Assembly: GCA_038496445.1 (NCBI GenBank)
Contig: JALMLS010000269.1
Span: 1 to 49,592, forward strand
Source: Trichosphaerium sp. ATCC 40318
Taxonomy: Eukaryota > Protista > Tubulinea
Direction: 5' to 3'
DNA: 49,592 nucleotides
The position numbers and the translations under genes are program-made. Below are positions 154 through 41,429 of this stretch, piece after piece (within the stretch, counting starts at the first letter, position 1; each line of letters starts with the position of its first letter). A model generated the notes under the pieces. It was not told the DNA's origin, ran no database searches, and saw only the letters and a program-made list of their open reading frames with translations.

Positions 154-918
154 ATGTAGCTTCGCTACATAATCTTATCCACTATCATACTGCTTCGCTG
201 AATAATGCATTCCACTTTAATAGTTGCAATTTGTTTTGTTTCATTATAATATTTTGGATTTTCTCATTTTTCCACATAAAAGCGCTTTGCTTCAAAATGC
301 ATTCCACTGTGAGGTTTGTATATGTACCGCTTCGCTGAATAATGCATTCCACTTTTAAATGTTACAATTTTTGTTTCATTATAATATTTTGGATTTCTTC
401 ATTTTTTTGCATAAAGCGCTTCGCTTCAAAATGCATTCCACTTTGAGGTTTATGCATGTACCGCTTTGCTAAATAATGCATTCCACTTTAGATATTATAT
501 TGTTGTTTCACTACAATATCTTGGATTTCTTCATTTTTTTCGCATAAAGCGCTTCGCTTCAGAATGCATTCCACTTTAAGCACCGCATATGTGCCGCTTC
601 GCTGAATAATGCATCCGATATTAGGTGTCGCATGCGTACCGCTTCGCTACAGTATCTTAGATTCTTTTAATTTTTTTTTCGCATTAGATTTTGTAATATG
701 GCGCTTCGCTTCAGAATGCATTCCACCATAATCTCTGCATGCCTACCGCTTCGCTACATAATGCATTCCACTTTAGGTCCCGCATGCGTGCCGCTTCGCT
801 ACAAATTGTTGGATTCTATGAGTTTTTTGCTTTTTTGCCGCTTCGCTACAGAATGTTGTCGTTGTGACCCTATAATATATCGCTTCGCGATATATTTCTA
901 CACAGTGCTTCGCACTGT
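154..918. repeat. Subtelomere-like degenerate tandem repeat (~45-bp subunit, ~135-bp higher-order unit) built on CCGCTTCGCT...AATGCATTCCACT
   Basis: GCTTCGC at 159,192,329,418,551,596,641,703,748,793,840,882,907 (plus two GCTTTGC variants); many spacings of ~45 bp; recurring aatgcattccac. Confidence 0.85.
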
Positions 919-4296: not shown

Positions 4297-4935
4297 GATG
4301 TCGTGTTGTATACGAGCTGAATGAACGAGAAAGAACAAGAAAAAATCGGTACGCCAACGCGGATAAAAAACATAGAAATTTTGTCACAAAAGAATGCCTA
4401 TTACCTCTATTTCGCCAAAAAGTTCAAAATTGGCGGCGCAACCGCCATTGAAGGACGCGAAGAACCAAAACGCTACTGCCGAACCACGACTTGGTTTTTA
4501 GCGAGTTCAAATAAGCCACCCGCTACGCAACCGTATCGCAGGGCTTCGTGAGAGATAGTGTTTGTATTGGTACTCAATATGGTCTATGATTGTAATGGCG
4601 TTACCATACATCGCATAGCGATTGGAGAGGTACATACCCAGTGCCAAATACCAACGAAGTGCCTACCCTCCACAAAAACGTCAAAGGCGACCAACATTTA
4701 ACAAAAAGGATACAGTCCGGTTCGTTTCCCCGCTATACATACCCTACACCTCCTCTGTTTAGTGCTGAAGAGCAGCCACGCAACGTCAATGTTGGTTGTC
4801 TATGCTCGGCGTGCAACCGCTAGTGGCGAACGACGTGAGTTGTCTGTGCTTGCTTGGTTAACGAGAAAGGGCTCGCGATGATAATCTGTTTTTTGTGATT
4901 GGGACATGCACAATCGTTCTTTTAATCAGTTGTAT

Positions 4936-5017
4936 GGCATGATGTCCGAGTGGTTAAGGAGTTAGACTCGAAATCTAATGGGCTCTGCCCGCGCAGGTTC
5001 AAATCCTGCTCATGTCG
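4936..5017 (+). tRNA. tRNA-Ser (anticodon CGA)
   Basis: Acceptor stem GGCATGA/TCATGTC+G; D-loop TGG; anticodon arm ttaga-CTCGAAA-tctaa; long variable arm gggc-tct-gccc; T-loop GGTTCAAATCC. Confidence 0.97.
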
Positions 5018-5028
5018 AATAAGTTCTC

Positions 5029-15783: not shown

Positions 15784-16993
15784 ATGAGAATGAACGGATT
15801 ATTTCTTGCTTTCTTATGTCTATGCGCACTTGTATCACTAGTATCAGCTCATGGACGTCTTACAGTACCTGAAACAAGGGACGTACAAAACGGTAGACGT
15901 AGAGACCAACAACATGCCCCAGTATTCCTTCAAAACGGCGATTGGGTATCAGGACACGTGTGCAGAGATCTTCCTTTTGTCGGCTCGACAGCAACTTACC
16001 AAGCCGGAGGAACTTACTCAACAGAATGGTTCTTCGAAGCTAATCATCCTGGAGATTGCTTTTTCTACCTCTCCTTCGACAATGAACAAACATGGGCTAA
16101 AATCGCCGAGATTCGCGACTGCCACCTTATAAGCGGATGGGATATGACAATACCTTCATGGGTTCCTAGCGGTCCTGCAGTACTTCGTTGGGAATGGTAT
16201 GCTCTTCAACAAGTCATCAATGTTGAGCACTATCTTCAATGTGCCGACATCACGATTACAGGAGGAAACACAGGAGCTGTTGCTTGGACCCCAGTCGTCA
16301 CTATTCCTGGTCACCTTCCTTTGGATGCCAGTGGTTACAGACTTGTATACGATGTAAACGCACCTTTCTTCTTCACTGGACCTGCAGTAGCACAATACAT
16401 TTCTGGCGGTACAACACCACCACCGCCACCACCTACAATGGGAACTCCACCAACAATGGGAAGTACTCCACCTCCACCACCAACAATGGGAAGCACTCCA
16501 CCACCTCCACCAACAATGGGAAGTACACCTACACCATCTGGTAACGCTTTCTGTCCAACAATTTCAAACGTTGAAATCAACAGTACGTAGCGCTTTCTCT
16601 TTTTTGTTTTTCTGCCTTTATTCTTGAAATTTATTTCGTTTAGACTGGGGTAGTGGTATGAACGTCGTTGTCTACCTCACAGCACCAACAAGTGGCGCAC
16701 CAATTACATCTGTCAGAGTAAGACAAGTATCTCCAGGTGGCGCTACAACAGACAACTGTTGGTCATCAACTGGCGCAGTCACCTCTGCATCTGCAACTGA
16801 AACTGGCACTAAATTCGTACGTTCTTTTTTCTAAAACAACTTCTTTTTGAATTCCACTGACTTTGTTCTTTAGATCAGCTTGTACAATCCTTGGGTAGCA
16901 GGTAGTGCGATTCCTATACTTGGTTGCGCATGGAGTGTTGGTGACAACAACATTGCCGTATCTGTAATTGAAGTAAACGGCAATGCTTGTTAG
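15784..16993 (+). CDS. Lytic polysaccharide monooxygenase-like protein + P/T linker + CBM2-like module
   Basis: Signal peptide ends VSA|H (His-brace H1); second His in ANHPG; LRWEW; EHYLQCADI (axial Tyr); C-terminal module C..WGSG....VNGNAC over 3 exons. Confidence 0.85.
16417..16530 (+). repeat. Coding minisatellite (PPTMGST) in LPMO linker
   Basis: Four copies of ccaacaatggga(agt)ac-like units. Confidence 0.85.
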
Positions 16994-21762: not shown

Positions 21763-24700
21763 ATGGTACGTAAACCACATGCCGATCATAAAGGAACTAT
21801 TTTCTGCAGACCTCTACATTGCCAATTTCATTATGCGTTGGGTGGTTCTATACGCTCATAATGCGCAGTTAGCGCTTTGCGCTTGCTGTTATTAATTTTT
21901 TTTAAATAGCAACAAGCCATAGTACAGCCAAACAAGGGCCTTACCGAGCTACAAATAGCGGAGGTAAAGAAAGCCTTTGCTATGTGCGACCAAGATGGAA
22001 ATGGCGTAATAGACGCCACAGAATTACGTGTGCTCGTAAAATCAATTTTGGGCGACCCACAAGAGTCAGAGTTTCAAAGTATTTTAAAAGCTGTTGACAA
22101 GGACGGCAACGGAGTAAGTTTATTACAATCACTTTTTAAATGCTATCAGGGCTGTTATAGATTGATTTAAATCAAATTACGACAAAAACACAATCAATTG
22201 GCGGTCTTTTTTATCTTAAGTTCATCCTCTTAGCAGATATACAACGTTTTATGGCGTATTTATTGCTATTAGATCATTGAATGGCCAGAATTCTTGAGCG
22301 CGATGCAAGATTGGTTAAAAGCAGATGCAGAAACTCAACCAGCGTCAAAACGCAGGAAGATAAAACAAGCCGATGTACTACCATCTGTACCCTTGCAAAA
22401 CAAAGAAATTCTCCACATGATTTTTTTTTGCTGAGCTTTTTTTTTGTTTTTCTTTCTTTCCTTGTGTGTCAGAGAACTAACGTATACGTGTAGCAAAGGA
22501 CTGATATACATCAACAAATTAAAGGATTCTTTGGTCAATTCAGACAAGGAGAAAACTACGAGAGGATAAGGTAAGAGAGAAAGACATTTTGGCTTTTTTT
22601 TTTTTGACTTTCCTTTTTTGATTAGAGCAAACTTGGCGTTGTATGGATCTGATACTGTCAATACAAGTACGGTTTTGTGGTTATAGTATTTAAAGAAACT
22701 AACAGTATCTAGAACAACAAGATGCTCGTCTTAGAGCTCAATACCATATAAGTCAGAGTCCACAAGCAAAGGTAAACTACTTTGTTTCAGCTTAAACTTT
22801 TTACCTTTCTAAACGTTGTTGTAGCTCAGCTTTCTACAAGAATATCGAGAAACATTAAACAATAAATGGGGTGGTATAGTCGAAGCAATTTGTAGTAATT
22901 CCCCTGAGCGTGCGACACAAGGCATGACTATTTTAGCTCAATTGCTCAGTGTTGTTGAAGTACGGAGAATAAACAACATACTCAGTTACCTTGTTTCCTC
23001 ATGATAAAATATAGGTATTTGATTCTCCTATACAACGACGTGGTGTAGCAAGCGAAATCGGAACACTATTCAACATGTTGATTGAATCTAACTTGGCTCA
23101 GAAATGCTTGACATTTCTACGTGAAACAAGTTATCCAGAATTACAGGTAGGCTTTCTCAAAGTTTTATTATCTTTGAGCTGATTTATTGTACTAGTATCT
23201 AGCACTAAAGTGTATCAGTTACTTTGCACCAGGCCCTCGTATTGCATCAACACCAGAGAATTCACGTCATCACCCAGCGGCTATGTACTACAAGAAATTC
23301 ATTATAATTGAAGGAGGTGTACTTAATATTTTGAACCTTCTTCAAAGTAATGTACCAAAGGTGGTCGAAGAGGTATGTTATTTTTATGTTTATATATGAA
23401 CTCACGTCCCCCAGGCGGTTGTTTGTATAAGTGCAATAGCCTCTGATGATCCAGATTGTCGTGATTTAATGTTGCGTACAAATGCAGTACCTCTATTGGG
23501 AAGGTTAGTGTATTGCCACATTAATAACATCTCAATTTACTGTTAGGCTTGTACTGCCAAATGCTGGCGTCTCGATTCTTCGCAAGCTTAGTTGGACGTT
23601 TAGTGTGTTAGCAGGTGTAACACATCCAAGTACTAGGTAATCAAATCACACCGTGCTCATTAACTGACATACCTTTAGACCTCCAAAATGGGAAGTTGTT
23701 AGACCTATTTGTCAATTTGCAACCAAGTTGCTATTTTGTGAAGATACCATCATAGTTGGGAATGCTTTAAAGACCCTTAGTCTTATTTTACCGGGAATGG
23801 CTCCTGATGCAGGCATTATTAGACGTATCATTAGTCTCCTTCGGTACGAGCCTTCACATGTTGTTTGTTTGGTTTGACAGAGATTTCTAGTGTCCGTGAG
23901 AGAGTTCCAATACATTTAATTGTTTGTTGCTTGGGCGTTGTAGCAGATTTGGCTAGGTTTGATACACAATTAACAGGGATCCTGTTGCAACATGGATTAC
24001 TCAAAGAACTGCAATTACTCTTGCGAAGCAAACATGAAGGTATAAAAAGACACGTGGCAGTTTTTGTTATTGACTCTATTTTTGTCAAGATGTTCGCCTT
24101 CGTAGTTGTGATGTTGTTATTGTTTTGGCCAACTTACGCGGTCAAATACAAGTACGACACTTCTGATTCGACTATTAAACTGACTAGCCCTTAGCCACTA
24201 TTTACTGAGCGTATTGTTGATGGTATAATCGCACTTGTTGGATTGAGTACGACTGATACATTTTATCTAAATGAGGTTTTCTAATACCACTTTCTTAGAC
24301 GATGAGGTTACAAGAGCGAAGCTAGTGAAAGTACTCAAGTTTGTCACTCGAGGAACACCAAGTCAGATAAGGTATGCTTTAATTAAAACCGACCCAAGGC
24401 AGATGTCTTAACATGAATAACTTTAGATACCTTGTTGATAAAGACATTATTCGTATCTTGTGCAGATTGTTTAATCATTTCAAATCATACGACTCTGTCT
24501 TAAGTGATGTGTATAAATATGTTCGTGCAACCTTTAACTTTGAGTTCATACGTGATACTCTCACTGCTCTGGAGAATATTTTGAATATTGGTGAAATGGA
24601 GGTAAGGATATAACTGAACGAATGATTTTCATTTTCTTTTTGATGATTTTTCTTTTGGGCTTGGTTTGACTTTTGTCATTTTTCAGTAATGTATATTTAT

Positions 24701-27123: not shown

Positions 27124-27740
27124 CATTGGTTTCTTTTTTTTGTAAAAGCTGTTCAAAAACAAGCAAACGACGAAAAAATAAACAGCTTTTTGGGTACAAC
27201 TTTTGGTACCACGTTGATATTTAAATTAAGGATAACCTTGTTAAAAATCCATGCATGGAGTTGTAGCAACATTCGAATTTCTCTTTCCGTGTCGAACAAA
27301 TTGGAGCTACTGTAATGTCAGGCTCTGTACATTAATCATGTAGTTAGTTGTTAGTATAGTTTACGTTCGTTACCTGTTCGTAACCTCACATGTAAGTTAC
27401 ATTTCACTTTCATAATCCCTCAAACATCCTGATATCGACTCTGCTGTTCTTCTTTCTTGTGATTGTGTTTCCCGAAATCTGATTTGCTACTTAGAGTACT
27501 TGCAAACATCATAGAGGCTTACCAACCGCAAAAGGGCTTTCTCAATAAAAGCTCACAGATTGTGAAATAGATTGACAACGTTACCTAATTTATAAAACGA
27601 GCTTTCAAGAACACGTGATGCGCCCCTTACTTACTTTTTCTGTTATATTCTATGTTCTATGTTTGACAACTCAAGCTAACAGTACGCTCCAACAACCGAA
27701 AAAAAAATGACAATTTCACTTTTTAATCATTTCTGCATAG

Positions 27741-28495
27741 CTAAACGCAGTGTGGCTAGTACTACTGCTGTTTGTGAAAATGAGAAACGTATTGATCTTC
27801 CAAACGGAAGTAAGTACGTGGGGTGCTTTAAAGAAGACAAATTTGACGGTTTTGGCGTGTACACGTGGTCTGATGGTAAATTCTACCATGGAGCTTGGAA
27901 AAGCGGAGAACGCAACGGTTATGGCGTACTCACGTGGAAAACAGGCATGAGGTATGATGGAGAGTGGTTAGAAGGAAAATACCATGGTAAAGGATCTGTG
28001 ATTTACCCAGACGGCGAAAGTATAGAAGGTTATTGGGAACGAGGAGAATACAAGGGGAAAAAAAAAGAGCAAGAGGTAAGGGAAAAAAACACCCTTTCTA
28101 AGTTTGGAATTGCTTTAAACGCTATTTAGGATATTACTGGCGCTAACGACATAGGTAGTGATGGATATGATAGTACTCTGAAACTGTGGGTAAGCGTTTT
28201 ATCAGAGTTATCACCAAATCAACAACAGTTTGTTTACAATTTGTAGGTTTTAGGTCCACTTTTCTTGTTGATGTTTGTGTTCGGTTTGATGACTTTAAGA
28301 TCGTTTTTTATTCGAAGCAATAGAGTAAGTATTCCCAACGCTTCTCCTAAAACAGTACAGCCTATAAAGGAAGTGAAAAATGAGTCAAGTTTAAGTGATT
28401 CTAAGATCGAACCAGTTACTGAAAAACCAGATCTTACACATCTCTTCGAGACTTATGATTATATTCAAAAATTTCATAGTCTTAAAAATGAATAA
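27741..28495 (+). CDS. MORN-repeat protein (5' exons unresolved)
   Basis: Four MORN repeats Y.G.W..G...G.G..TW.DG in ORF 27707-28129. Confidence 0.8.
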
Positions 28496-29580: not shown

Positions 29581-31320
29581 AGACATTCAGCGTGGAACCA
29601 TATATCACAGAGCTATATATGTACGGAACTGTACTATATGAGAGTGAAAGGCACACATAGCATTGTGAAAAGACTAAAGTTGCCGCCAACGCAATATTTG
29701 CTTGTGTACAATTTCAGTACACACAGGGAAATGTATGTCACTAATTTTAATGACATTGATATTCTCAATGGGGTCTTATATTGAACACTCTAGGTCACTT
29801 GCCTATTCTCCAACCATATCACATTATTTTGTATATTCTCAGGTGGTGTGTGATCAATTCATGGACACTGCTAAAAGAGAAAAATGTGGACGCTGTGAAT
29901 TTTATCATGTCCTGGCCTATCAAATGCTTCAATATGAGATATTGCTGTTTGTATACAATATTGAGCATGATTTCCATACCTGTAAAAAAGAAACAAACAA
30001 TTAAAAGTTGACTGTTGTGTGTATGGGTGCGTTGAAAAAAGTTGAAATTCAAATGAACCGGGAGTTTTTTTCTTATGAACCCGCCAAAAGACTCAAACAC
30101 CCCATGTTGTATGCTGAGATGAATTGATTTTGTGCTCGCACAGTTTTTTTCTCCACTTCTTTGCTCCCAAATCCACTATGTTCCTATGAATTTCATGACA
30201 CGATGTATTGTAGTTCGGATTGGTTGTTTGGAATTGTGCAACAAGTTGTTTTTTCTTCTGTATGGTAAAACACGTGATTCCAAATGTTTTTTTTTATTAA
30301 CCATTTAGATAGACTTGTTTTGTAGGTGAGCACACTGTTAGATTGAATGCGCTCAAAATAACCCAAGTTAGGGCTTGATATTCGTAAACACTCTGGTAGC
30401 GATATTTTTGCGTCTAGGAGAACCTTACAGCTGTTTTCAGTCATGTAGTTCAATTTTTCTCGTAGATTGGTCAAATGTTTCTGTTTATTGTCTAGTTTAC
30501 GTTTTTTAGTTGCTGCACGTGTTGAAGTACGGTTTGTACACGCCACCACAGGTAGGTACTTGAAAATATAACGAAGCAAGTATATGGTGGTTTTACAAAA
30601 ATCACGTGCGTGTAATAAAATAAAAACGCTTCGTAACAATTCCTCTGACCAGTAAACCGTGTTATGCAGCCCTTTCTGCCGTAAATGCGTTAGTCTTGTT
30701 TACAAACTTGTTGCCACCTCCACTGCGAGTTGCTCATTGTACAATAGCGAATACGTGACATCTAAAAATCAGCAGGTGAAACCAGCACAGATAGAAAAAC
30801 AAAAATAAAGAGAATAAAATCTACGCCACTGGAATAAACAACATGTTTTTACAACCGAAAAGATACGACAGCACAACATTCTTGTATTTTGGCGTCTGGT
30901 TCTCGTTATTATTTCTGGTTACAATAACGACATTATGATAATACCCTTTGTGCTTGCCTATCGGGGTAAAAAATAGCCCGCAAAAGGATATTCGCCACTT
31001 ACGAGCAACAAAGTTGAGCGAGGGTATTCGCACTATTTGGTGAAATATTTGAAAAACCTGTGTTTCGATGAAGGTACATGGCCTGTTTTGTCTCCAGGTT
31101 GTAACTCCGTTTACTTAAATAAACAGATTGAAGGTCTCCAAGTGGTTAAAAAAACTATTGTACAGGCAATCACGTTCTTGTGCGAATCAGTTAATTTCAA
31201 AAAAACCACAAAACCAGAACCGTAACGCAAATTACAATAACACTTCACTGAAAAATCTCATGTGTCAAGTAACACCAACTTAATACTGCTTTGTGATAAC
31301 CTCAAGAGTGACAACACGTC

Positions 31321-34300
31321 ATGGCAGAATCACAGAGTGACAAATACCAACGTTTAGATAAGGAAGAACCAACCAACATCCATCTCCCCATAATTGAAAT
31401 TGTGTTTTCTTTTGCAGGTTTGTAATGCTTGCTAAGCAAATAGTTGACAAAGTTTAGCACGAAATGGATACAATGAAGTTGTATCAATCTTACTCAAAGC
31501 CAACGCCAATGTTGATGCTGTTGATAACTATGGAAACACAGCTTTAATATGTGCAGGTAACATGATATGATGAGATACAACATGTACATATCTCATTCTA
31601 CTATTTAGCACAAAAAGGATACAATGAAGTTGTATCAATCTTACTCAAAGCCAACGCCAATGTTGATGCTGTTGATAACTATGGAAAGACAGCTTTAATA
31701 TGTGCAGGTAACATGATATGATGAGATACAACATGTACATATCTCATTCTACTATTTAGCACTAAATGGACACAATAAGGTTGTATCAATCTTACTCAAA
31801 GACAATGCCAATATTGATGCTGTTGATAAATATGGATGCACATCTTTAATATGGGCAGGTAACATGATATGATGAGATACAACATGTACATATCTCATTC
31901 TACTATTTAGCACAATATGGACACAATGAAGTTGTATCAATCTTACTCAAAGCCAACGCCAATGTTGATGCTGTTGATAACTATGGAAACACAGCTTTAA
32001 TATGTGCAGGTAACATGATATGATGAGATACAACATGTACATACCTCATTCTACTATTTAGCACAAAATGGACACAATGAAGTTGTATCAATCTTACTCA
32101 ACGCCAACGCCAATGTTGATGCTGTTGATAAACATGGAAAGACAGCTTTAATATATGCAGGTAACATGATATGATGAGATACAACGTGTACATATCTCAT
32201 TCTACTATTTAGCACGAAAAGGATACAATGAAGTTGTATCAATCTTACTCAAAGCCAACGCCAATGTTGATGCTGTTGATGAAAATGGATATACAGCTTT
32301 AATATGTGCAGGTAACATGATATGATGAGATACAACATGTACATATCTCATTCTACTATTTAGCACGAAATGGACACAATGAAGTTGTATCAATCTTACG
32401 CAAAGCCAACGCCAATGTTGATGCTGTTGATAACTATGGAAAGACAGCTTTAATTAATGCAGGTAACATGATATGATGAGATACAACATGTACATATCTC
32501 ATTCTACTATTTAGCACTAAATGGACACAATAAGGTTGTATCAATCTTACTCAAAGACAATGCCAATATTGATGCTGTTGATAAATATGGATGCACATCT
32601 TTAATATGGGCAGGTAACATGATATGATGAGATACAACATGTACATATCTCATTCTACTATTTAGCACGAAATGGACACAATGAAGTTGTATCAATCTTA
32701 CTCAAAGCCAACGCCAATGTTGATGCTGTTGATAAATATGGAAAGACAGCTTTAATATGTGCAGGTAACATGATATGATGAGATACAACATGTACATACC
32801 TCATTCTACTATTTAGCACAAAATGGACACAATGAAGTTGTATCAATCTTACTCAAAGCCAACGCCAATGTTGATGCTGTTGATAAATATGGAAACACAG
32901 CTTTAATATGTGCAGGTAACATGATATGATGAGATACAACATGTACATATCTCATTCTACTATTTAGCACAAAAAGGATACAATGAAGTTGTATCAATCT
33001 TACTCAAAGCCAACGCCAATGTTGATGCTGTTGATGAAAATGGATATACAGCTTTAATATGTGCAGGTAACATGATATGATGAGATACAACATGTACATA
33101 TCTCATTCTACTATTTAGCACAAAAAGGATACAATGAAGTTGTATCAATCTTACTCAAAGCCAACGCCAATGTTGATGCTGTTGATGAAAATAGATATAC
33201 ATCTTTAATATGTGCAGGTAACATGATATGATGAGATACAACATGTACATACCTCATTCTACTATTTAGCACGAAAAGGAAACAATGAAGTTGTATCAAT
33301 CTTACTCAACGCCAACGCCAATGTTGATGCTGTTGATAAATATGGAAACACAGCTTTAATATGGGCAGGTAACATGATATGATGAGATACAACGTGTACA
33401 TATCTCATTCTACTATTTAGCACAAGAAGGACACAATGAAGTTGTATCAATCTTACTTAATGCCAACGCCAAAATTGATATTGTTGATGAAGATGGAAAT
33501 ACAGCTTTAATATATGCAGGTAACATGATATGATGAGATACAACATGTACATATCTCATTCTACTATGTAGCACAAAATGGATACAATGAAGTTGTATCA
33601 ATCTTACTCAAAGCCAACGCCAATGTTGATGATGTTGATGAATATGGAAATACAGCTTTAATGTGTGCAGGTAACATGATATGATGAGATACAACATGTA
33701 CATATCTCATTCTACTATTTAGCAATAAATGGACACAATGAAGTTGTATCAATCTTACTCAAAGCCAACGCCAATGTTGATGCTGTTGATAAAAATAGAA
33801 AGACAGCTTTAATATGTGCAGGTAACATGATATGATGAGATACAACATGTACATATCTCATTCTACTATTTAGCACGAAATGGACACAATGAAGTTGTAT
33901 CAATCTTACTCAAAGCCAACGCCAATGTTGATGCTGTTGATAAATATGGAAACACAGCTTTAATATGTGCAGGTAACATGATATGATGAGATACAACATG
34001 TACATATCTCATTCTACTATTTAGCACGAAAAGGAAACAATGAAGTTGTATCAATCTTACTCAACGCCAACGCCAATGTTGATGCTGTTGATAAAGATGG
34101 AAAGACAGCTTTAATTAATGCAGGTAACATGATATGATGAGATACAACATGTACATATCTCATTCTACTATTTAGCAATAAATGGACACAATGAAGTTGT
34201 ATCAATCTTATTCAAAGCCAACGCCAATGTTGATGCTGTTGATGAACATGGAAATACAGCTTTGATTTATGCAGGTAATATCGCAAATGAGATAAAAACT

Positions 34301-36808
34301 ATGTTTATTTACTATCATTTGAGATTTTGACTATATGTCAATGTTAATGTTGAAATTAATCAAACCTAATGCAAATAATATTGATACTATTGATGAAAGT
34401 GAAACCAACAAGAATTCAGGTATTACATTACAAAAAATTTGGTGAAATAATAGCTAACACTGTAAGTAGTAGTAACTCCATGCCAAAGAAAGTGGCAAGA
34501 CTTTATGTTCATTTTAATTAGAGAAGTGGTATCAAATACACCCTCAGCTGTTGAAAAATTCGTAACTTTCTTAAAATACTGTCCAAGTGGTAAACAATGC
34601 CATCCACTGTGGAGATACTGTAAAAAGCACTATTCGCAAAATGTCGACATAGAGGGGAGAAAACAGTTTGAAGAATGGCTTCACCGTTTGGTACACTTTG
34701 CTGAATACCAATACCTTAAACTAACCATTACAACGTTTAGCCAACGCGGTATTATTTCAAACTGGCAATGGAAAAAGGTATTTGTCATTTAATTTGTTCC
34801 GCATGCGATCCCAAAGTTGTACTGTCTCCGGTACGATATCTTCACTGCTAGCATCTACACTACAAACAACATTCTTTTTCTACAGGAATTCTGGAAACAA
34901 GATGGGCAATCAATGCAAGGTATTCTGCATGATATGCCCAATGATGCCTGGGTCAATAACAGTCAAGATGAATCCTTAAAAGAAGAGTGTACTGAAGGTA
35001 AGAAGCGTGGTGATATAATACTAAAAAAAGTTTTCAAAAGGATTAAAAGGTGAAAACGCGTGGAGCCTGAATCCGCGATTGTATTTTGCAAATAATTGGG
35101 ATAGATCTAACACGTGCGTTCAATTACTTTTTATTAGTTCTAATATTACAACAAGAGGCATTGTTGCAAAGGCGACACACTACAAAACACTGAATCTGCT
35201 TGATGACAACGACAAAGTGGCAGTCAGAGAATTCAACATCCTCAAACAGGAGATGTCAAAACTACATGGCTGTGACAATTACGAAATCATTGAAGCGACT
35301 CTCGTTTGTAATGACATCTTGACAGAAAACTTTGGTCGAATCAACGAAATACTGACGCACAGACATCAGTACGGTTGCTCCACACTTCATAGGCATTTCC
35401 GTGATTCTAAACATGCATCTATTAGAGAACTGCCCAAGTTGTTTAAAAAACAAAATTGGCAAACTGATAGTACCTACAAGGAATACAAAGAGACTGTGTA
35501 CCAAAAGTGCAACGCCCTCACTGATTTTAATGATTGTTATACTGAAAAAAAAGATAAGGTAATGTTCTTGGTACTCTTGCACTACAAACATTTTATTTAG
35601 TTACCAGTGATATTGATGGTCCATGGAACAACCGAAGAAGCAGCTAAGAGTATTGCAAAGGCTGGTTTTGGAACTGTGAGTTCTTTAGACGCTGGTTACT
35701 ATGGTCAAGGGATATACTTCACTGTACGTTATTACCCAATTATTGCAGGTGGTCAATATTCATTTTCGCCAATAGAGAAGCATAAAGTATGCCGCTTCAT
35801 ATGATTTATCAGGAAGAACTGCAAAAACACTGGTTTTAAGTCTTGTTACTCCTGGGAACGTTTATCCGGTAAGCAAACAATAATATTGATGTGGATATTC
35901 TTTACTTACTTGATGATAAAAAGCATGATCCCCTTGTATGTAAAAAAACTGATGAGGGTACCAAAACCATGAATGAAAGCTTGCACGGAAGGCCAATAAA
36001 ACCAGGCTACCAAAGTCATTATGCATTGGTAGACCACGCTGGTAAACTTCTGCCAGCAGATAAACTTAAAGATGCAGTATACGATGAGCTGGTAGTGGCA
36101 CAAGGTACAGCAATACAATTGAAAAATGTGATTAAATTCTCAAGCACTATTTTAGATACTCAAGCTGTTGCTCGGTACATCATCAAAGTTACAAACAAAC
36201 ATAAAAAAAAACGTAAAACTTCAAAAACCAAGAAAGGTAATAAAAAGACAAAGAAAGAGAAAGATCAAGCTTCAGAAGTAGATACTGATGGCTCAGCTGG
36301 CGAGCTATCTGATGATGAACTATCTGATTCTGACGACACTTTTATTTCTAACCGGTATAATTTTATAGTATCTTTTAAACTTAAGTTTTGTACTAGAAAA
36401 CTGTGGGCTGCCCATGATGATTCAACTGATGATGAACAACCAAGTTATAATTATGCCAATCTCAAACTAGAATTACAAGAAGCAAACAGCGAGGTAGAGA
36501 AACTGAAGAAGAGCCTGGCTGAACTTCATCGGAATTCACAGAAAATGAATGCAAACAAAGAACAGCACATTACTGAATTGACTGAAAGAATCAAAGACCT
36601 CACAGGAAGCAATAACACCCTAAAGCTAGACAATATCAACCTCACAAGAAGCAACAACACCCTAAATCTAGACAATATCAACCTCAAAGAAAGCGTCAAC
36701 AACCTCTCCGAAGGTGTCCAAGATCTAATGCGAGACAACACTAGCCTAAAGGAGAAGAATGCTATTCAACTGGCAAAAATAGCTCTCTTTGAAAGTACAG
36801 CAAAGTAA
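31321..36808 (+). CDS. Ankyrin-repeat (19 one-exon repeats) - helical region - PARP-like ADP-ribosyltransferase - basic/acidic tract - coiled coil
   Basis: Exon 1 31321-31417; 19 phase-1 exons of 99 nt from 31458 to 34274, all open; ART motifs VHGT, AGYYGQGIYFT..KYAASY, SLVTPGNVYP, GYQSHY, YDELVV (H-Y-E); C-terminal heptads. Confidence 0.88.
31458..34274 (+). repeat. 151-bp exon+intron tandem array (19 exons, 18 introns)
   Basis: Exon starts at 31458+151n through 34176; intron gtaacatgatatgatgagatacaacatgtacatatctcattctactatttag nearly invariant. Confidence 0.98.
36597..36686 (+). repeat. 42-bp coding tandem duplication (two heptads) in coiled coil
   Basis: LTGSNNTLKLDNIN / LTRSNNTLNLDNIN. 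Confidence 0.85.
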
Positions 36809-37110
36809 TTCTAATGCATCTGTTGTAAACAAGCAACATTTATCAATAAACAACCACAGTTTAGTTTTCCTCACAAATTGTACTTTGTTTCAAATCCAAC
36901 ATGTATGTGCACATTTAAAAGTACCAAAATATTTTTTTAACTCAAGTTTTATGAAACAAGAAACACACTCAAGTTCAGTTCTGATTTCCACAACAGATCT
37001 ACATGTCAATGCACGCATTTTGTATTTGAAACTGACAAAAGATGTGTAAACATTCCTCATTGTTGGCTCAAAAAAAACCAGAAAGAAGACCTCAAAAAAC
37101 GCACGTGTGT

Positions 37111-38750: not shown

Positions 38751-39496
38751 ACTTCATTTTGTATTGTTATTATTTTCAGGTTCCGTGCCTTTAGTAGCAG
38801 GTTGTAACAGAAGATGGCTTATCATCGTACAACAACTATGTTAACAATGGAGGAATACTTAAGCGATTGTTCATTGCTGTTTACAAAGCGAGCGTGAATA
38901 GAAACGCATTGAGCGTTAAGATACTGGTTTATTTTTGTGTGCAGTACTCAAGATTGATAAAGCTAAGTTGACCGTCAATTGTTATTTCTTTCAGATTCAA
39001 TACCATTGACCCTAGTATTTTTAGGCCTCTTGATGTTGCAAACAAAAAGCCTTCGTCGAGTGTATAAGCATTTGATGATCACTCGCAACCGGGAGGGGGT
39101 AATAAAAGGATCTACGGCCAGGGATAGACATCAAACAGTCCGTTTCTCACCTACCTTTTACAAACCATGAAACTCCAAGGAGAAGTTGCAATGGTCGAAA
39201 AAGTTTGACCCGCCACGTGGAAATTATGTAGCAGTTCCGAAGTTTCTGTACTTTCGAAACTTTCTTGGTATAATTCTCAAAAGCACAGCTGTGTGTAAGT
39301 GCGGTGTTTGTACATATTACGTCTATAAACGATGCTTGTCTTTGCCAAATCATTGTCCTTCTAGTTCTGAAGATGTACCAGTCTTCGACTTTCCAAAGAC
39401 AAAGCAAACAGCAGGTATTGTGATGTTTTAACAAATGGAAAAAAACTGCTGTAGGCATAAAAACTGTGTTACTGTAACAAATCAGTAACAACACAA

Positions 39497-41280
39497 CACC
39501 AGAACCGTAATACAAATAACAATAACTTACCCGAAAAATATCACCTGTCAAGTGACACCAACTTAATACTGCTTTGTGATAACCTCAAGAGTGACAACAT
39601 GTCATGACAGACTCACAGAGTGACAAAAAAACCCAATATCTAAGTTAAGAACCAAACCCTCTCTATCGTTAGAATGTTCGTGTAATTGAACTTGTGATTG
39701 CTTTCGCAGGTTTGTATTGGTAGGTGCATAAATAGCTAACCAATCATAGCAACAAATGGCCATGCTGAATCTATAACAAAGTTAATCGAATCCAATGGCA
39801 ATATTGATGTGTTAATGGTAATCAAAGCCAGATCGGAGATAGACCACGCATAGACATCGCTTGTATATTCATACATGAGAATAAACATACTTGATTTTAA
39901 GGATGCAATCAGCGTCAAACTGAAATACATACCGGTTGATTCTAAAGCACCAGCACTCTGTAAAACAGTACTAACTATAGAATCAGAAAAAGAAAGTACA
40001 AGTGTACTATCACCCACGTTCAAAATACTCTCCAAGGCTGTGAGGACATCACGAATAAAGGCAAACTTGTAAATTGGTTCGATATACTTATATGCATCAG
40101 CCAATACACGATCAAAACCCCGTAACATATCACACAATCCACAAAGCACACGAATGATACCACTTTTTACAAACATGCTAAAACTACAATTCAGTAAGCA
40201 CCTTTGTAGATGTTAAGCTAATACGTACTCCACTGTACATGCTACACCTTGGGCCATATAGCTAACAACTTTAACTAGTTTAACTCTAGTAACTTCATCA
40301 CCTAACGCCCAATTAAGTTACTAAACCTTAGGTAAGAAACGCACGTCTTTGAAATAGTGCGATTATACTGTTAACAGACTTGAATAAACTGTGGCTACAA
40401 ATAGTATTAGTAAGGTAAGATTAAAATTGGTCTTCATACAAGACATTCTCCTCGCATTTGTACCAATAGAATAATAAGGTCACAACTGCTTAGTTGGATA
40501 TCTTCACAAAAAAGCTATCCAACATTGATGCTTTTAATGTAGCTGGAGATACAGGTTTGATACGTGCAGGTATTGAGCAATACAAGTCGCTCACACTATT
40601 ATTTAGCACGATATGGACAAAATTGTATCATTTCTAATCGATCTGTTGATAAACATGGAAATACAGGTTTAATTTGTGCAGGTAACAGATAGATGAGATA
40701 AACATGTACATATCTCATTCTACTATTTAGCACAAGAAGGACACAATGAAGGTGTATCAATGCTAATTAATGCCAACGCCAATATTTATACTGTTGATAA
40801 ATCAAAGTGGAAACACACCTTTGGTTAATGCAGGTAATATCACCGTATCACATTAGATATTGAGTCATCAATTTGACGGTCTCTAGTTGTATTAGATCAA
40901 TAACCTAGCATTTTTCGGATTTAACAAAGTTGTATCAACGCTAAACTAAATGTTGATGCACATGGAAACACAGCTTTGCTTAATGCCGGTAGTATCATAC
41001 ATTAAATACAACATGAGAGCTCACACTACTATTTTTTTTTTAGTATTAAACGGTGACAACCAAATTGAAATTGTATCCATGTTAATCCATGTCAATGCCA
41101 ATATTGAGGCTGTGAATGTATGTGGAAAAACAGATTTGATTTGGACAGGTAATATCACAACAAGGTAAAATACATGTTATTCACGTTACTATTTAGCACA
41201 AATGGGATTCAATAAAATCGATCAATTTTAGTCAAAGCCAATGCCGATATTGACGCTGTTGATAAAGCTGGAAACACAGA
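39497..41280 (+). pseudogene. Decayed paralog of the ankyrin gene 5' region
   Basis: 39497-39800 aligns with 31212-31520 (shared caccaacttaatactgctttgtgataacctcaagagtgacaaca, exon 1, intron 1); degenerate ankyrin exons 40520-41280 with indels and stops; intron 40682-40730 matches the array intron. Confidence 0.85.
39815..40515 (-). pseudogene. Intron-containing fragment of an ARM-repeat paralog of the 21763-27123 gene
   Basis: DIQLSSCDLIILL, DEVTRVKLVKV and FIRDVLTALESILNVGD match DVRLRSCDVVIVL, DEVTRAKLVKV and FIRDTLTALENILNIGE, with introns at matching positions. Confidence 0.85.
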
Positions 41281-41429
41281 GCACAGGACCTTCACATTTT
41301 TAACTGTCTAGACGGAACTTACAAGAACTAGCGAAAGTGACAAGATCTGGCACTGCTTATTTTTGTTTAATTAATAGCACGACCCAATTTTTTGAATTAA
41401 AAGAATCTGTGGCAATAAAACGGGAGATT

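Follow-up and report, generated by a model that had tools for sequence, protein, structure and literature searches.

An array of one-exon ankyrin repeats with a hypervariable predicted binding face in a PARP-like gene of the amoeba Trichosphaerium sp.

We analyzed a stretch of 49,592 nucleotides from Trichosphaerium sp. ATCC 40318 (NCBI GenBank assembly GCA_038496445.1, contig JALMLS010000269.1, positions 1 to 49,592 of the forward strand), which is called the window here. It contains a tandem array of ankyrin repeats at 31458–34274 (+), in which 19 exons, each 99 nt long, alternate with 18 introns, each 52 nt long, within a gene that also encodes a PARP-like domain. The differences between the units are concentrated in seven codons, and these coincide with the binding positions of designed ankyrin repeat proteins (DARPins). 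The array most likely arose by tandem duplication and homogenization of an exon-plus-intron module, with diversifying selection acting on the binding face; its diversity would be held in the germline, and the gene would give one main product. An earlier reading of the letters alone (the sequence-only reading) had seen in the array a built-in device for combinatorial diversity, by exon skipping or by crossover in the introns. Isoform or somatic diversity of this kind is unlikely, even when both routes are counted together.

Results and Discussion

Tandem Repeats Finder identified one dominant array in the window, at 31453–34278, with a period of 151 bp, 18.7 copies, 93% matches, and a score of 4847. 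Each unit is a 151-bp module of one 99-nt exon and one 52-nt intron. Exons start at 31458+151k (k = 0 to 18) and introns at 31557+151k on the forward strand, and slicing at these positions gave 19 of 19 exons with a length of 99 nt (33 codons) and phase 1-1, which confirms the earlier claim of one symmetric exon per repeat. Every exon is directly preceded by AG and directly followed by GTAA. The initial CA of each exon completes an alanine codon opened by the terminal G of the previous exon. Because all exons measure 99 nt and have phase 1-1, the reading frame survives when any unit is gained, lost, or skipped, as had been claimed.

The 52-nt intron consensus (GTAACATG...CTATTTAG) gave 18 matches with three or fewer mismatches, against 0 expected from shuffled sequences. 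A representative copy is found at 31557–31608 (+; GTAACA...ATTTAG). Only four variants of the intron occur, and 12 of the 18 copies are identical. The splice sites had been described as practically identical; their near-identity holds, but full identity does not, as the last donor reads GTAATA and one acceptor ATGTAG. The intron length is not a multiple of three, and a retained array intron leads to a stop after four codons. With unit-length exons and a constant intron position and phase (19/19), the array falls into class II of the repeat genes defined by Street, Rose and Barrick (2006), a class that PMC4585158 summarizes as having only exons of unit multiples and as formed by local intron/exon duplication.

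The units are ankyrin repeats. Three single array exons scored 24.0–26.9 bits with the Pfam model Ank (PF00023; gathering score 21.1), and Ank_4 was above its cut-off too. Among solved structures, the top matches of the array exons were DARPin and ankyrin chains, with expect values (E) down to 4e-51 against DARPin chains when summed over the repeats. Residues 1–23 of the exon align to positions 11–33 of the Ank model. The codon broken by the intron is therefore that of the second alanine of TPLHxAA (TALIxA-A here, with the hyphen marking the intron), at model position 10. The sequence-only reading had placed the intron within helix 1. The TALIxA-A break agrees with this, but the exact location is the C-terminal end of the helix and not its middle.

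Aligned to DARPin chains, exon residues 24, 25, and 27 fall on the x sites of DxxGx at which DARPins vary from one another, and residues 2 and 3 fall on the two x sites of AAxxG. We take these exon residues to correspond to the positions 2, 3, 5, 13, and 14 that are randomized in DARPin design. On the alignment to DARPin chains, positions 2, 3, 5, and 10 of one structural repeat are encoded in exon n and positions 13, 14, and 16 in exon n+1. The variable residues of one structural repeat thus straddle the intron, and the proposal that the intron splits the binding face is borne out. In the hand-built gene model, degenerate half-repeats are present on both sides of the array (exon 1 and 34324–34419).

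The variation among the units is distributed very unevenly. The hypervariable codons are those of exon residues 2, 3, 5, 24, 25, 27, and 32. Pairwise differences per site amount to 0.27 in these seven codons, 0.038 in the framework codons, and 0.012 in the introns; the density in the hypervariable codons is 23 times that in the introns. Variable columns number 14 of 21 in the hypervariable codons, 16 of 78 in the framework, and 3 of 52 in the introns (Fisher test, p = 1.5e-7 for introns versus hypervariable codons and p = 0.02 for introns versus framework codons). The mean pairwise identity is 91% for the array exons and 98.8% for the array introns. Codon differences from the consensus comprise 86 nonsynonymous and 10 synonymous ones. 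The ratio of nonsynonymous differences per site to synonymous differences per site (pN/pS) is 2.9 in the seven hypervariable codons, 0.85 elsewhere, and 1.9 overall; these values are simple counts rather than the output of a codon model, and they come from within-array comparisons, which gene conversion affects. Units 5 and 13 illustrate the pattern. They have the same backbone, including a framework variant and the flanking intron variants, and the seven nucleotides by which they differ all fall in hypervariable codons. Since the changes are concentrated at seven codons of the predicted binding face, diversifying selection for ligand specificity is indicated.

The array resembles a DARPin library in its constant consensus framework and in its variation at DxxGx and AAxxG, although DARPins are synthetic. 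It also departs from the DARPin pattern: natural position 33 (V) is constant in the array, and variation extends to two further sites, the histidine of GH and the residue that precedes the final alanine of helix 1.

We considered whether a neutral and very young tandem expansion, or an assembly artefact, could account for the array without selection on the variable positions. The near-identity of the introns indicates that expansion or homogenization was recent, and a decayed sister array 6 kb downstream tells us that such arrays do die; both would suit a neutral history. However, the excess of differences in the seven codons over the introns, most of them nonsynonymous, and the coincidence of these codons with the ankyrin binding face argue against it, as do a reading frame that is intact over 1308 aa and RNA contigs that are 100% identical to the 3′ exons. 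An artefact would not yield 18 distinct exons that differ at structured positions. We give this explanation only a very slim chance.

A 9-bp hairpin stem in the intron (GAUGAGAUA/UAUCUCAUU) was examined as a cause of intron conservation and dropped. Its minimum free energy of −7.3 kcal/mol is no better than that of shuffled sequences (z = −0.38), and the stem is broken in three intron copies.

The array records its own remodeling. Units 3–6 (31760–32363, +) are the source or the copy of a segmental duplication with an offset of five units. Compared with units 8–11 (32515–33118), they show 0, 4, 5, and 1 differences per 151-nt unit, of which 0, 4, 4, and 1 are within the exons. Intron and framework variants are common to units that have differing hypervariable codons. 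Within an exon, the variable blocks on the 5′ and 3′ sides come in several combinations, as do those flanking an intron; the array is therefore a mosaic. The combinations of variable blocks across the array gave no sign that exchange was restricted to the introns. Taken as a statement about evolution, the suggestion of unequal exchange in the earlier reading is upheld by the remodeling in unit register, by the likeness of units 3–6 to units 8–11, and by the shared backbone variants.

Could such exchange also operate in the soma? Unequal sister-chromatid exchange, or the excision of circles of 151n bp, would give receptors that differ by nucleus or cell. Long near-identical runs are good recombination substrates, and the array records past duplication in unit register. 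Trichosphaerium is multinucleate and has a complex life cycle (PMC10521059), and for Ectocarpus, too, somatic recombination has been put forward (PMC3341825). Against this, a scan of JGI metagenome contigs for the 3′ half of the array intron followed by the exon start returned 0 matches, and more than ten years after the proposal no somatic recombinants have been found in brown algae (PMC11378527). Further, 18 of the 19 array exons are distinct and the assembly places them in one ordered array, which suggests a dominant stable form. We give somatic rearrangement only a very slim chance.

Two other sources of the pattern were considered. Introner-like mobile introns were rejected, as identical introns are confined to the tandem register of 151 bp and to the relic array close by, which is described below. 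For targeted mutagenesis of the kind known from diversity-generating retroelements, there is no template repeat or reverse transcriptase nearby, and the codon variants, judged by inspection only, do not follow an adenine-specific pattern.

The RNA evidence consists of assembled (Logan) contigs, among them those of X1, a small RNA run, and of X2. Contigs of both runs reach 31417, the end of exon 1, and then continue with the start of an ankyrin exon (CAACAAATGG...). Other contigs stop or continue exactly at the predicted borders 32060, 32160, and 33972, with exon sequence of the neighboring type. Most array contigs are 90–95% identical to the array and contain motifs that the studied gene lacks, such as WNG at exon starts and ALIHA at exon ends; they therefore represent expressed paralogs. 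What these contigs confirm is where the family is spliced; they do not tell which isoforms the studied gene makes. Contigs of X1 are 100% identical over 36503–36848, which includes the 3′ exons of the gene.

Proteins colinear with the gene model are present in the protein database: P0001 (JGI), P0002 (MMETSP0405, Trichosphaerium sp. ATCC 40318), and P0003. The last of these is found on transcript contig L001, where the same linker and PARP domain come immediately after at least seven contiguous ankyrin repeats, which are more diverged. The paralog transcripts P0001, P0003, and L001 share this order of contiguous ankyrin repeats followed by the linker and the PARP domain. Since L001 holds contiguous repeats before the linker and the PARP domain, the ankyrin-PARP architecture is transcribed and spliced.

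Very small introns are recognized across the intron, a mode known as intron definition. The introns of 40–57 nt throughout the gene would favor the pairing of splice sites across each intron. Exon skipping is reported to be far commoner in bilaterians than in other eukaryotes and to be rare outside bilaterians (PMC6335736). Because of the tiny introns and the rarity of skipping outside bilaterians, one main and fully spliced product is expected.

These points bear on regulated cassette-exon skipping, in which any donor could be joined to any downstream acceptor to give many in-frame isoforms with new junction repeats. The symmetric exons and the nearly identical splice sites throughout the array would permit it, and since the intron splits the binding face (paratope), each skip would create a new hybrid repeat. 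LRR exons of Ectocarpus ROCO genes are reported to be alternatively spliced (PMC11378527). Among the RNA contigs, one X2 contig has a GT..AG joint from 33668 to 34174 that passes over 505 nt, equal to three exons and four introns. This contig is only 141 nt long, with 8 mismatches across 93 nt, and exon 14 is an equally possible match for the 25–32 nt of its short arm. We gave the joint no weight as a true skip, as the mapping is ambiguous and the contig may be a paralog or a chimeric de Bruijn path. Two more joints (32160 to 33731 and 32907 to 33570) have unmatched letters and ends other than GT..AG and were also taken as paralog or chimeric paths. No isoform series is seen among the assembled RNA contigs, which are unable to phase near-identical repeats; DNA length variants were not seen either, the DNA being represented by the assembly. 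Together with the intron sizes and the rarity of skipping outside bilaterians, this makes cassette skipping an unlikely account of the array. It is very unlikely that the array is a working diversity generator, in which exon skipping or somatic recombination in unit register would let the cells or nuclei of a clonal multinucleate amoeba vary in the in-frame selection or arrangement of the 19 cassettes that they express.

Several points weigh against a germline array that is spliced into one main product. The X2 contig with the 505-nt joint does link an exon-15-like end to an exon-19-like start. The assembled contigs, apart from being unable to phase the repeats, drop rare variants. Skipping of one exon would leave an ‘intron’ of 203 nt, which is still short, and intron definition is thus not a strict bar to it; constitutive splicing is an assumption. 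Finally, the synonymous divergence between units (0.045–0.05) is greater than the intron divergence (0.012). The array introns may be under extra constraint or conversion, and the counts are too small to explain the difference.

We propose the following history for a germline array with one main product. A 151-bp module would have been copied repeatedly in unit register, by unequal crossing-over or by replication slippage. As the module consists of whole codons between introns of the same phase, each gain or loss would remain in frame. The uniform phase would then be a property of survivorship, because one module was copied and in-frame copies survive, and not a purpose-built device. Recent duplication, gene conversion, or both would preserve the near-identity of introns and framework codons. 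Changes of amino acids would meanwhile accumulate and be retained at the seven codons of the concave binding face. The tiny introns would be removed one by one through intron-definition splicing, giving one main mRNA product if splicing is constitutive. Diversity would therefore exist in the germline, between units and between paralogs and probably between alleles, and would build up over evolutionary time.

The closest known systems are the ROCO genes with leucine-rich repeats (LRR) and the NB-ARC-TPR genes of Ectocarpus and other brown algae, which have one repeat per exon of the same phase and undergo intense duplication and shuffling (PMC3341825, PMC11378527). The comparison with Ectocarpus drawn by the sequence-only reading is an apt one (PMC3341825, PMC11378527). 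As in those genes (Zambounis et al. 2012; Teng et al. 2024), diversifying selection appears to act on ligand-binding residues of the repeat exons, here judged from the pN/pS values and the 23-fold difference in density within the array. The Ectocarpus genes are likewise candidate intracellular receptors in a lineage that is neither animal nor plant, and they have attracted the same speculation about splicing and somatic change. Later work on brown algae found alternative transcripts but not somatic recombinants (PMC11378527). The two systems differ in their repeats and effectors. The Ectocarpus repeats are LRR (72-bp exons, phase 2) and TPR, with Roc-COR or NB-ARC effectors and not a PARP-like domain. 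Alternative transcripts are reported in Ectocarpus and not here, and the introns of the array are tiny, nearly identical, and split the paratope.

The LRR family of Tetrahymena has arrays of equal-length exons of one phase, with a clonal origin, unequal crossing-over, fast evolution, and a location in high-turnover regions (PMC6564038). The authors of that study stated that they were unaware of any other eukaryote in which exons and introns are so uniform (PMC6564038). The array described here is a comparable case in an amoebozoan. The Tetrahymena family consists of thousands of genes with LRR on 90-bp, phase-2 exons, whereas the present array is made of ankyrin repeats and adds near-identical introns.

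The repeats of fungal HNWD and other NLR genes evolve in concert and have hypervariable binding positions (PMC1805685, PMC5100051). The array is like these WD40, ANK, and TPR repeats (Podospora HNWD; Paoletti et al. 2007, PMC1805685) in that near-identical repeats differ at a few selected surface positions; here, high repeat identity is combined with seven hypervariable codons that fall on the paratope positions of DARPins. Unequal crossing-over reshuffles the number and order of the repeats in the fungal genes, and the effector is NACHT or HET and not PARP. Fungal NLR-like repeats are not known to be separated by introns, and the exon-cassette aspect is therefore absent from them. In human ANK1, most of the 24 repeats are encoded on 99-bp exons. 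The arrays of class II genes and of the membrane-binding domains of vertebrate ANK1–3 are ancient and diverged, with long unrelated introns, whereas the units here are 93% identical and their 52-nt introns 98.8% identical.

Drosophila Dscam1 also has tandemly duplicated, frame-compatible exons. In Dscam1, one exon per cluster is chosen in a mutually exclusive manner that depends on docking and selector RNA pairing, and thousands of isoforms have been observed, whereas one main product is expected from the array. The architecture of one repeat per symmetric exon is already known from LRR and TPR genes, and the array is a further instance of it. Its particulars are the ankyrin repeat, the amoebozoan host, the PARP-like partner, the near-identical tiny introns, and the intron that splits the paratope.

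The array offers an unusually clean natural example of how a repeat protein may grow: a module is copied in register and only the residues predicted to contact the ligand diverge, a pattern reminiscent of a DARPin library. With it, the architecture of one repeat per symmetric exon is extended from the LRR and TPR genes of brown algae and ciliates to an ankyrin gene of an amoebozoan. The repeats are joined to a PARP-like effector domain that comes after LRR or Roc-COR modules in related proteins. This makes the family, with its putative receptor-like function, a plausible candidate for roles in recognition or immunity in amoebae that share their surroundings with bacteria and giant viruses. At 2.8 kb, the locus also offers a small test case for the question of whether such arrays yield somatic or isoform diversity. 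If a diversity generator did operate, one locus would supply a repertoire of ankyrin-PARP receptors, a protist counterpart of the diversification seen in Dscam or of the VLR type.

Gene Context and Neighboring Features

In the hand-built model, the gene spans 31321–36808 and consists of 32 exons and 31 GT..AG introns of 40–57 nt, open over 1308 aa. The domain order is an N-terminal cap, 19 ankyrin repeats, a C-terminal cap, a cysteine-rich linker, a PARP-like domain, a charged low-complexity stretch, and a coiled coil. A promoter-proximal region and the 5′ untranslated region lie at 31197–31320 (+). The 5′ end of a paralog transcript maps to approximately 31285, where an X1 contig begins, preceded by the tail of a template-switch oligonucleotide (GTACGGGG). 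Exon 1 (31321–31417, +), identified from the open reading frame and the RNA contigs, contains the ATG and an N-terminal capping half-repeat (...LPIIEIVFSFA) and ends in phase 1. It is followed by intron 1 (31418–31457, +; 40 nt, GT..AG). After the last array exon there is an intron of 49 nt (34275–34323, +) that has diverged from the array intron. The next exon (34324–34419, +; 96 nt, phase 1-1) is predicted from the open frame of the hand model to encode a degenerate C-terminal ankyrin cap (DFDYMSMLMLKLIKPNANNIDTID...).

The cysteine-rich linker (34467–35113, +) is made of four exons (34467–34690, 34741–34830, 34886–34997, and 35041–35113). It is supported by the borders and joints of X2 contigs and is colinear with the paralog proteins P0001 and P0003. 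Six exons encode the PARP-like ADP-ribosyltransferase domain (35156–36354, +): 35156–35368, 35426–35558, 35601–35723, 35776–35868, 35924–36104, and 36156–36354. The introns 35369–35425, 35559–35600, 35724–35775, and 36105–36155 are present as GT..AG joints in RNA contigs. The introns 34691–34740, 35114–35155, 35369–35425, and 36105–36155 are open or in frame, and they were set by RNA joints and by the paralogs P0001 and P0003.

The H-Y-E motif of the PARP-like domain is readable in the spliced model, with H in MVHGT, Y in GQGIYFT, and E in YDELVV. The profile of PARP and diphtheria-toxin-like ADP-ribosyltransferases (PF00644) matches one exon of the window weakly (18.3 bits, E = 0.0018), below the gathering score of 26.7. 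The colinear paralogs P0001, P0003, and P0004 are above this score with 31–45 bits (36.5 bits for P0001). The PARP-like domain belongs to a large family, with 1138 representatives at E ≤ 1e-3. In other sequences, it is placed after LRR, Roc-COR (ROCO), EGF, or TSP1 modules (P0008, P0018, P0024, P0033, and P0011). Judged from these domain orders, it behaves as a portable effector module that has been joined to various putative repeat ‘sensor’ domains.

The last part of the gene (36397–36808, +) comprises a low-complexity stretch of acidic and basic residues and a coiled-coil tail, and closes with the stop codon, as read from the open reading frame and weak matches to coiled-coil families. A 42-nt in-frame tandem repeat (36597–36691; 2.3 copies, 92%) within the coiled-coil tail is a second, small in-frame unit duplication in this gene. 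The draft genome of Trichosphaerium sp. has 37.69% G+C, short introns with a mean length of 75 bp, and 8.7 introns per gene, and comes with long-read data and single-cell transcriptomes (PMC10521059); the G+C content of the window is 37.9%. The genome paper does not mention ankyrin or PARP (PMC10521059).

A second copy of the 5′ region of the gene is found at 39482–39627 (+) and is 82–90% identical to 31197–31344 (families D16 and D17). The promoter, the 5′ untranslated region, and the first codons of the ankyrin-PARP gene are thus duplicated 8.3 kb downstream, upstream of a relic array. This decayed relic of a related ankyrin exon/intron array (40480–41290, +; D12–D15) contains truncated exons and exons with stops, and besides the main array it is the sole one of the family in the window. 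One exon is truncated to 75 nt, and another has an in-frame TAA after a small insertion. The 3′ 28 nt of the relic's 49-nt intron are the same as in the array intron. The hairpin is intact in the relic copy's intron (z = −2.6). On the opposite strand, an open reading frame at 39736–40176 resembles one at 24413–24613. It seems that the locus belongs to a more extensive segmental duplication, inverted in part. The relic looks like a dying sister copy, and arrays of this type are born and lost locally.

Further features were noted elsewhere in the window. Upstream of the ankyrin-PARP gene there is an open reading frame with MORN repeats (27707–28129, +; Pfam MORN, E = 3.7e-18). ARAGORN and Rfam agree on a tRNA-Ser(CGA) gene at 4935–5018 (+). 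The start of the window (188–828) holds tandem repeats with periods of 133, 152, and 45 bp that are rich in CGCTTCGCT motifs. At 16426–16536 there is a 30-nt tandem repeat that looks in frame (CCACCAACAATGGGAAGTACTCCACCACCA, 2.7 copies) and is probably a Pro/Thr-rich coding repeat of another gene.

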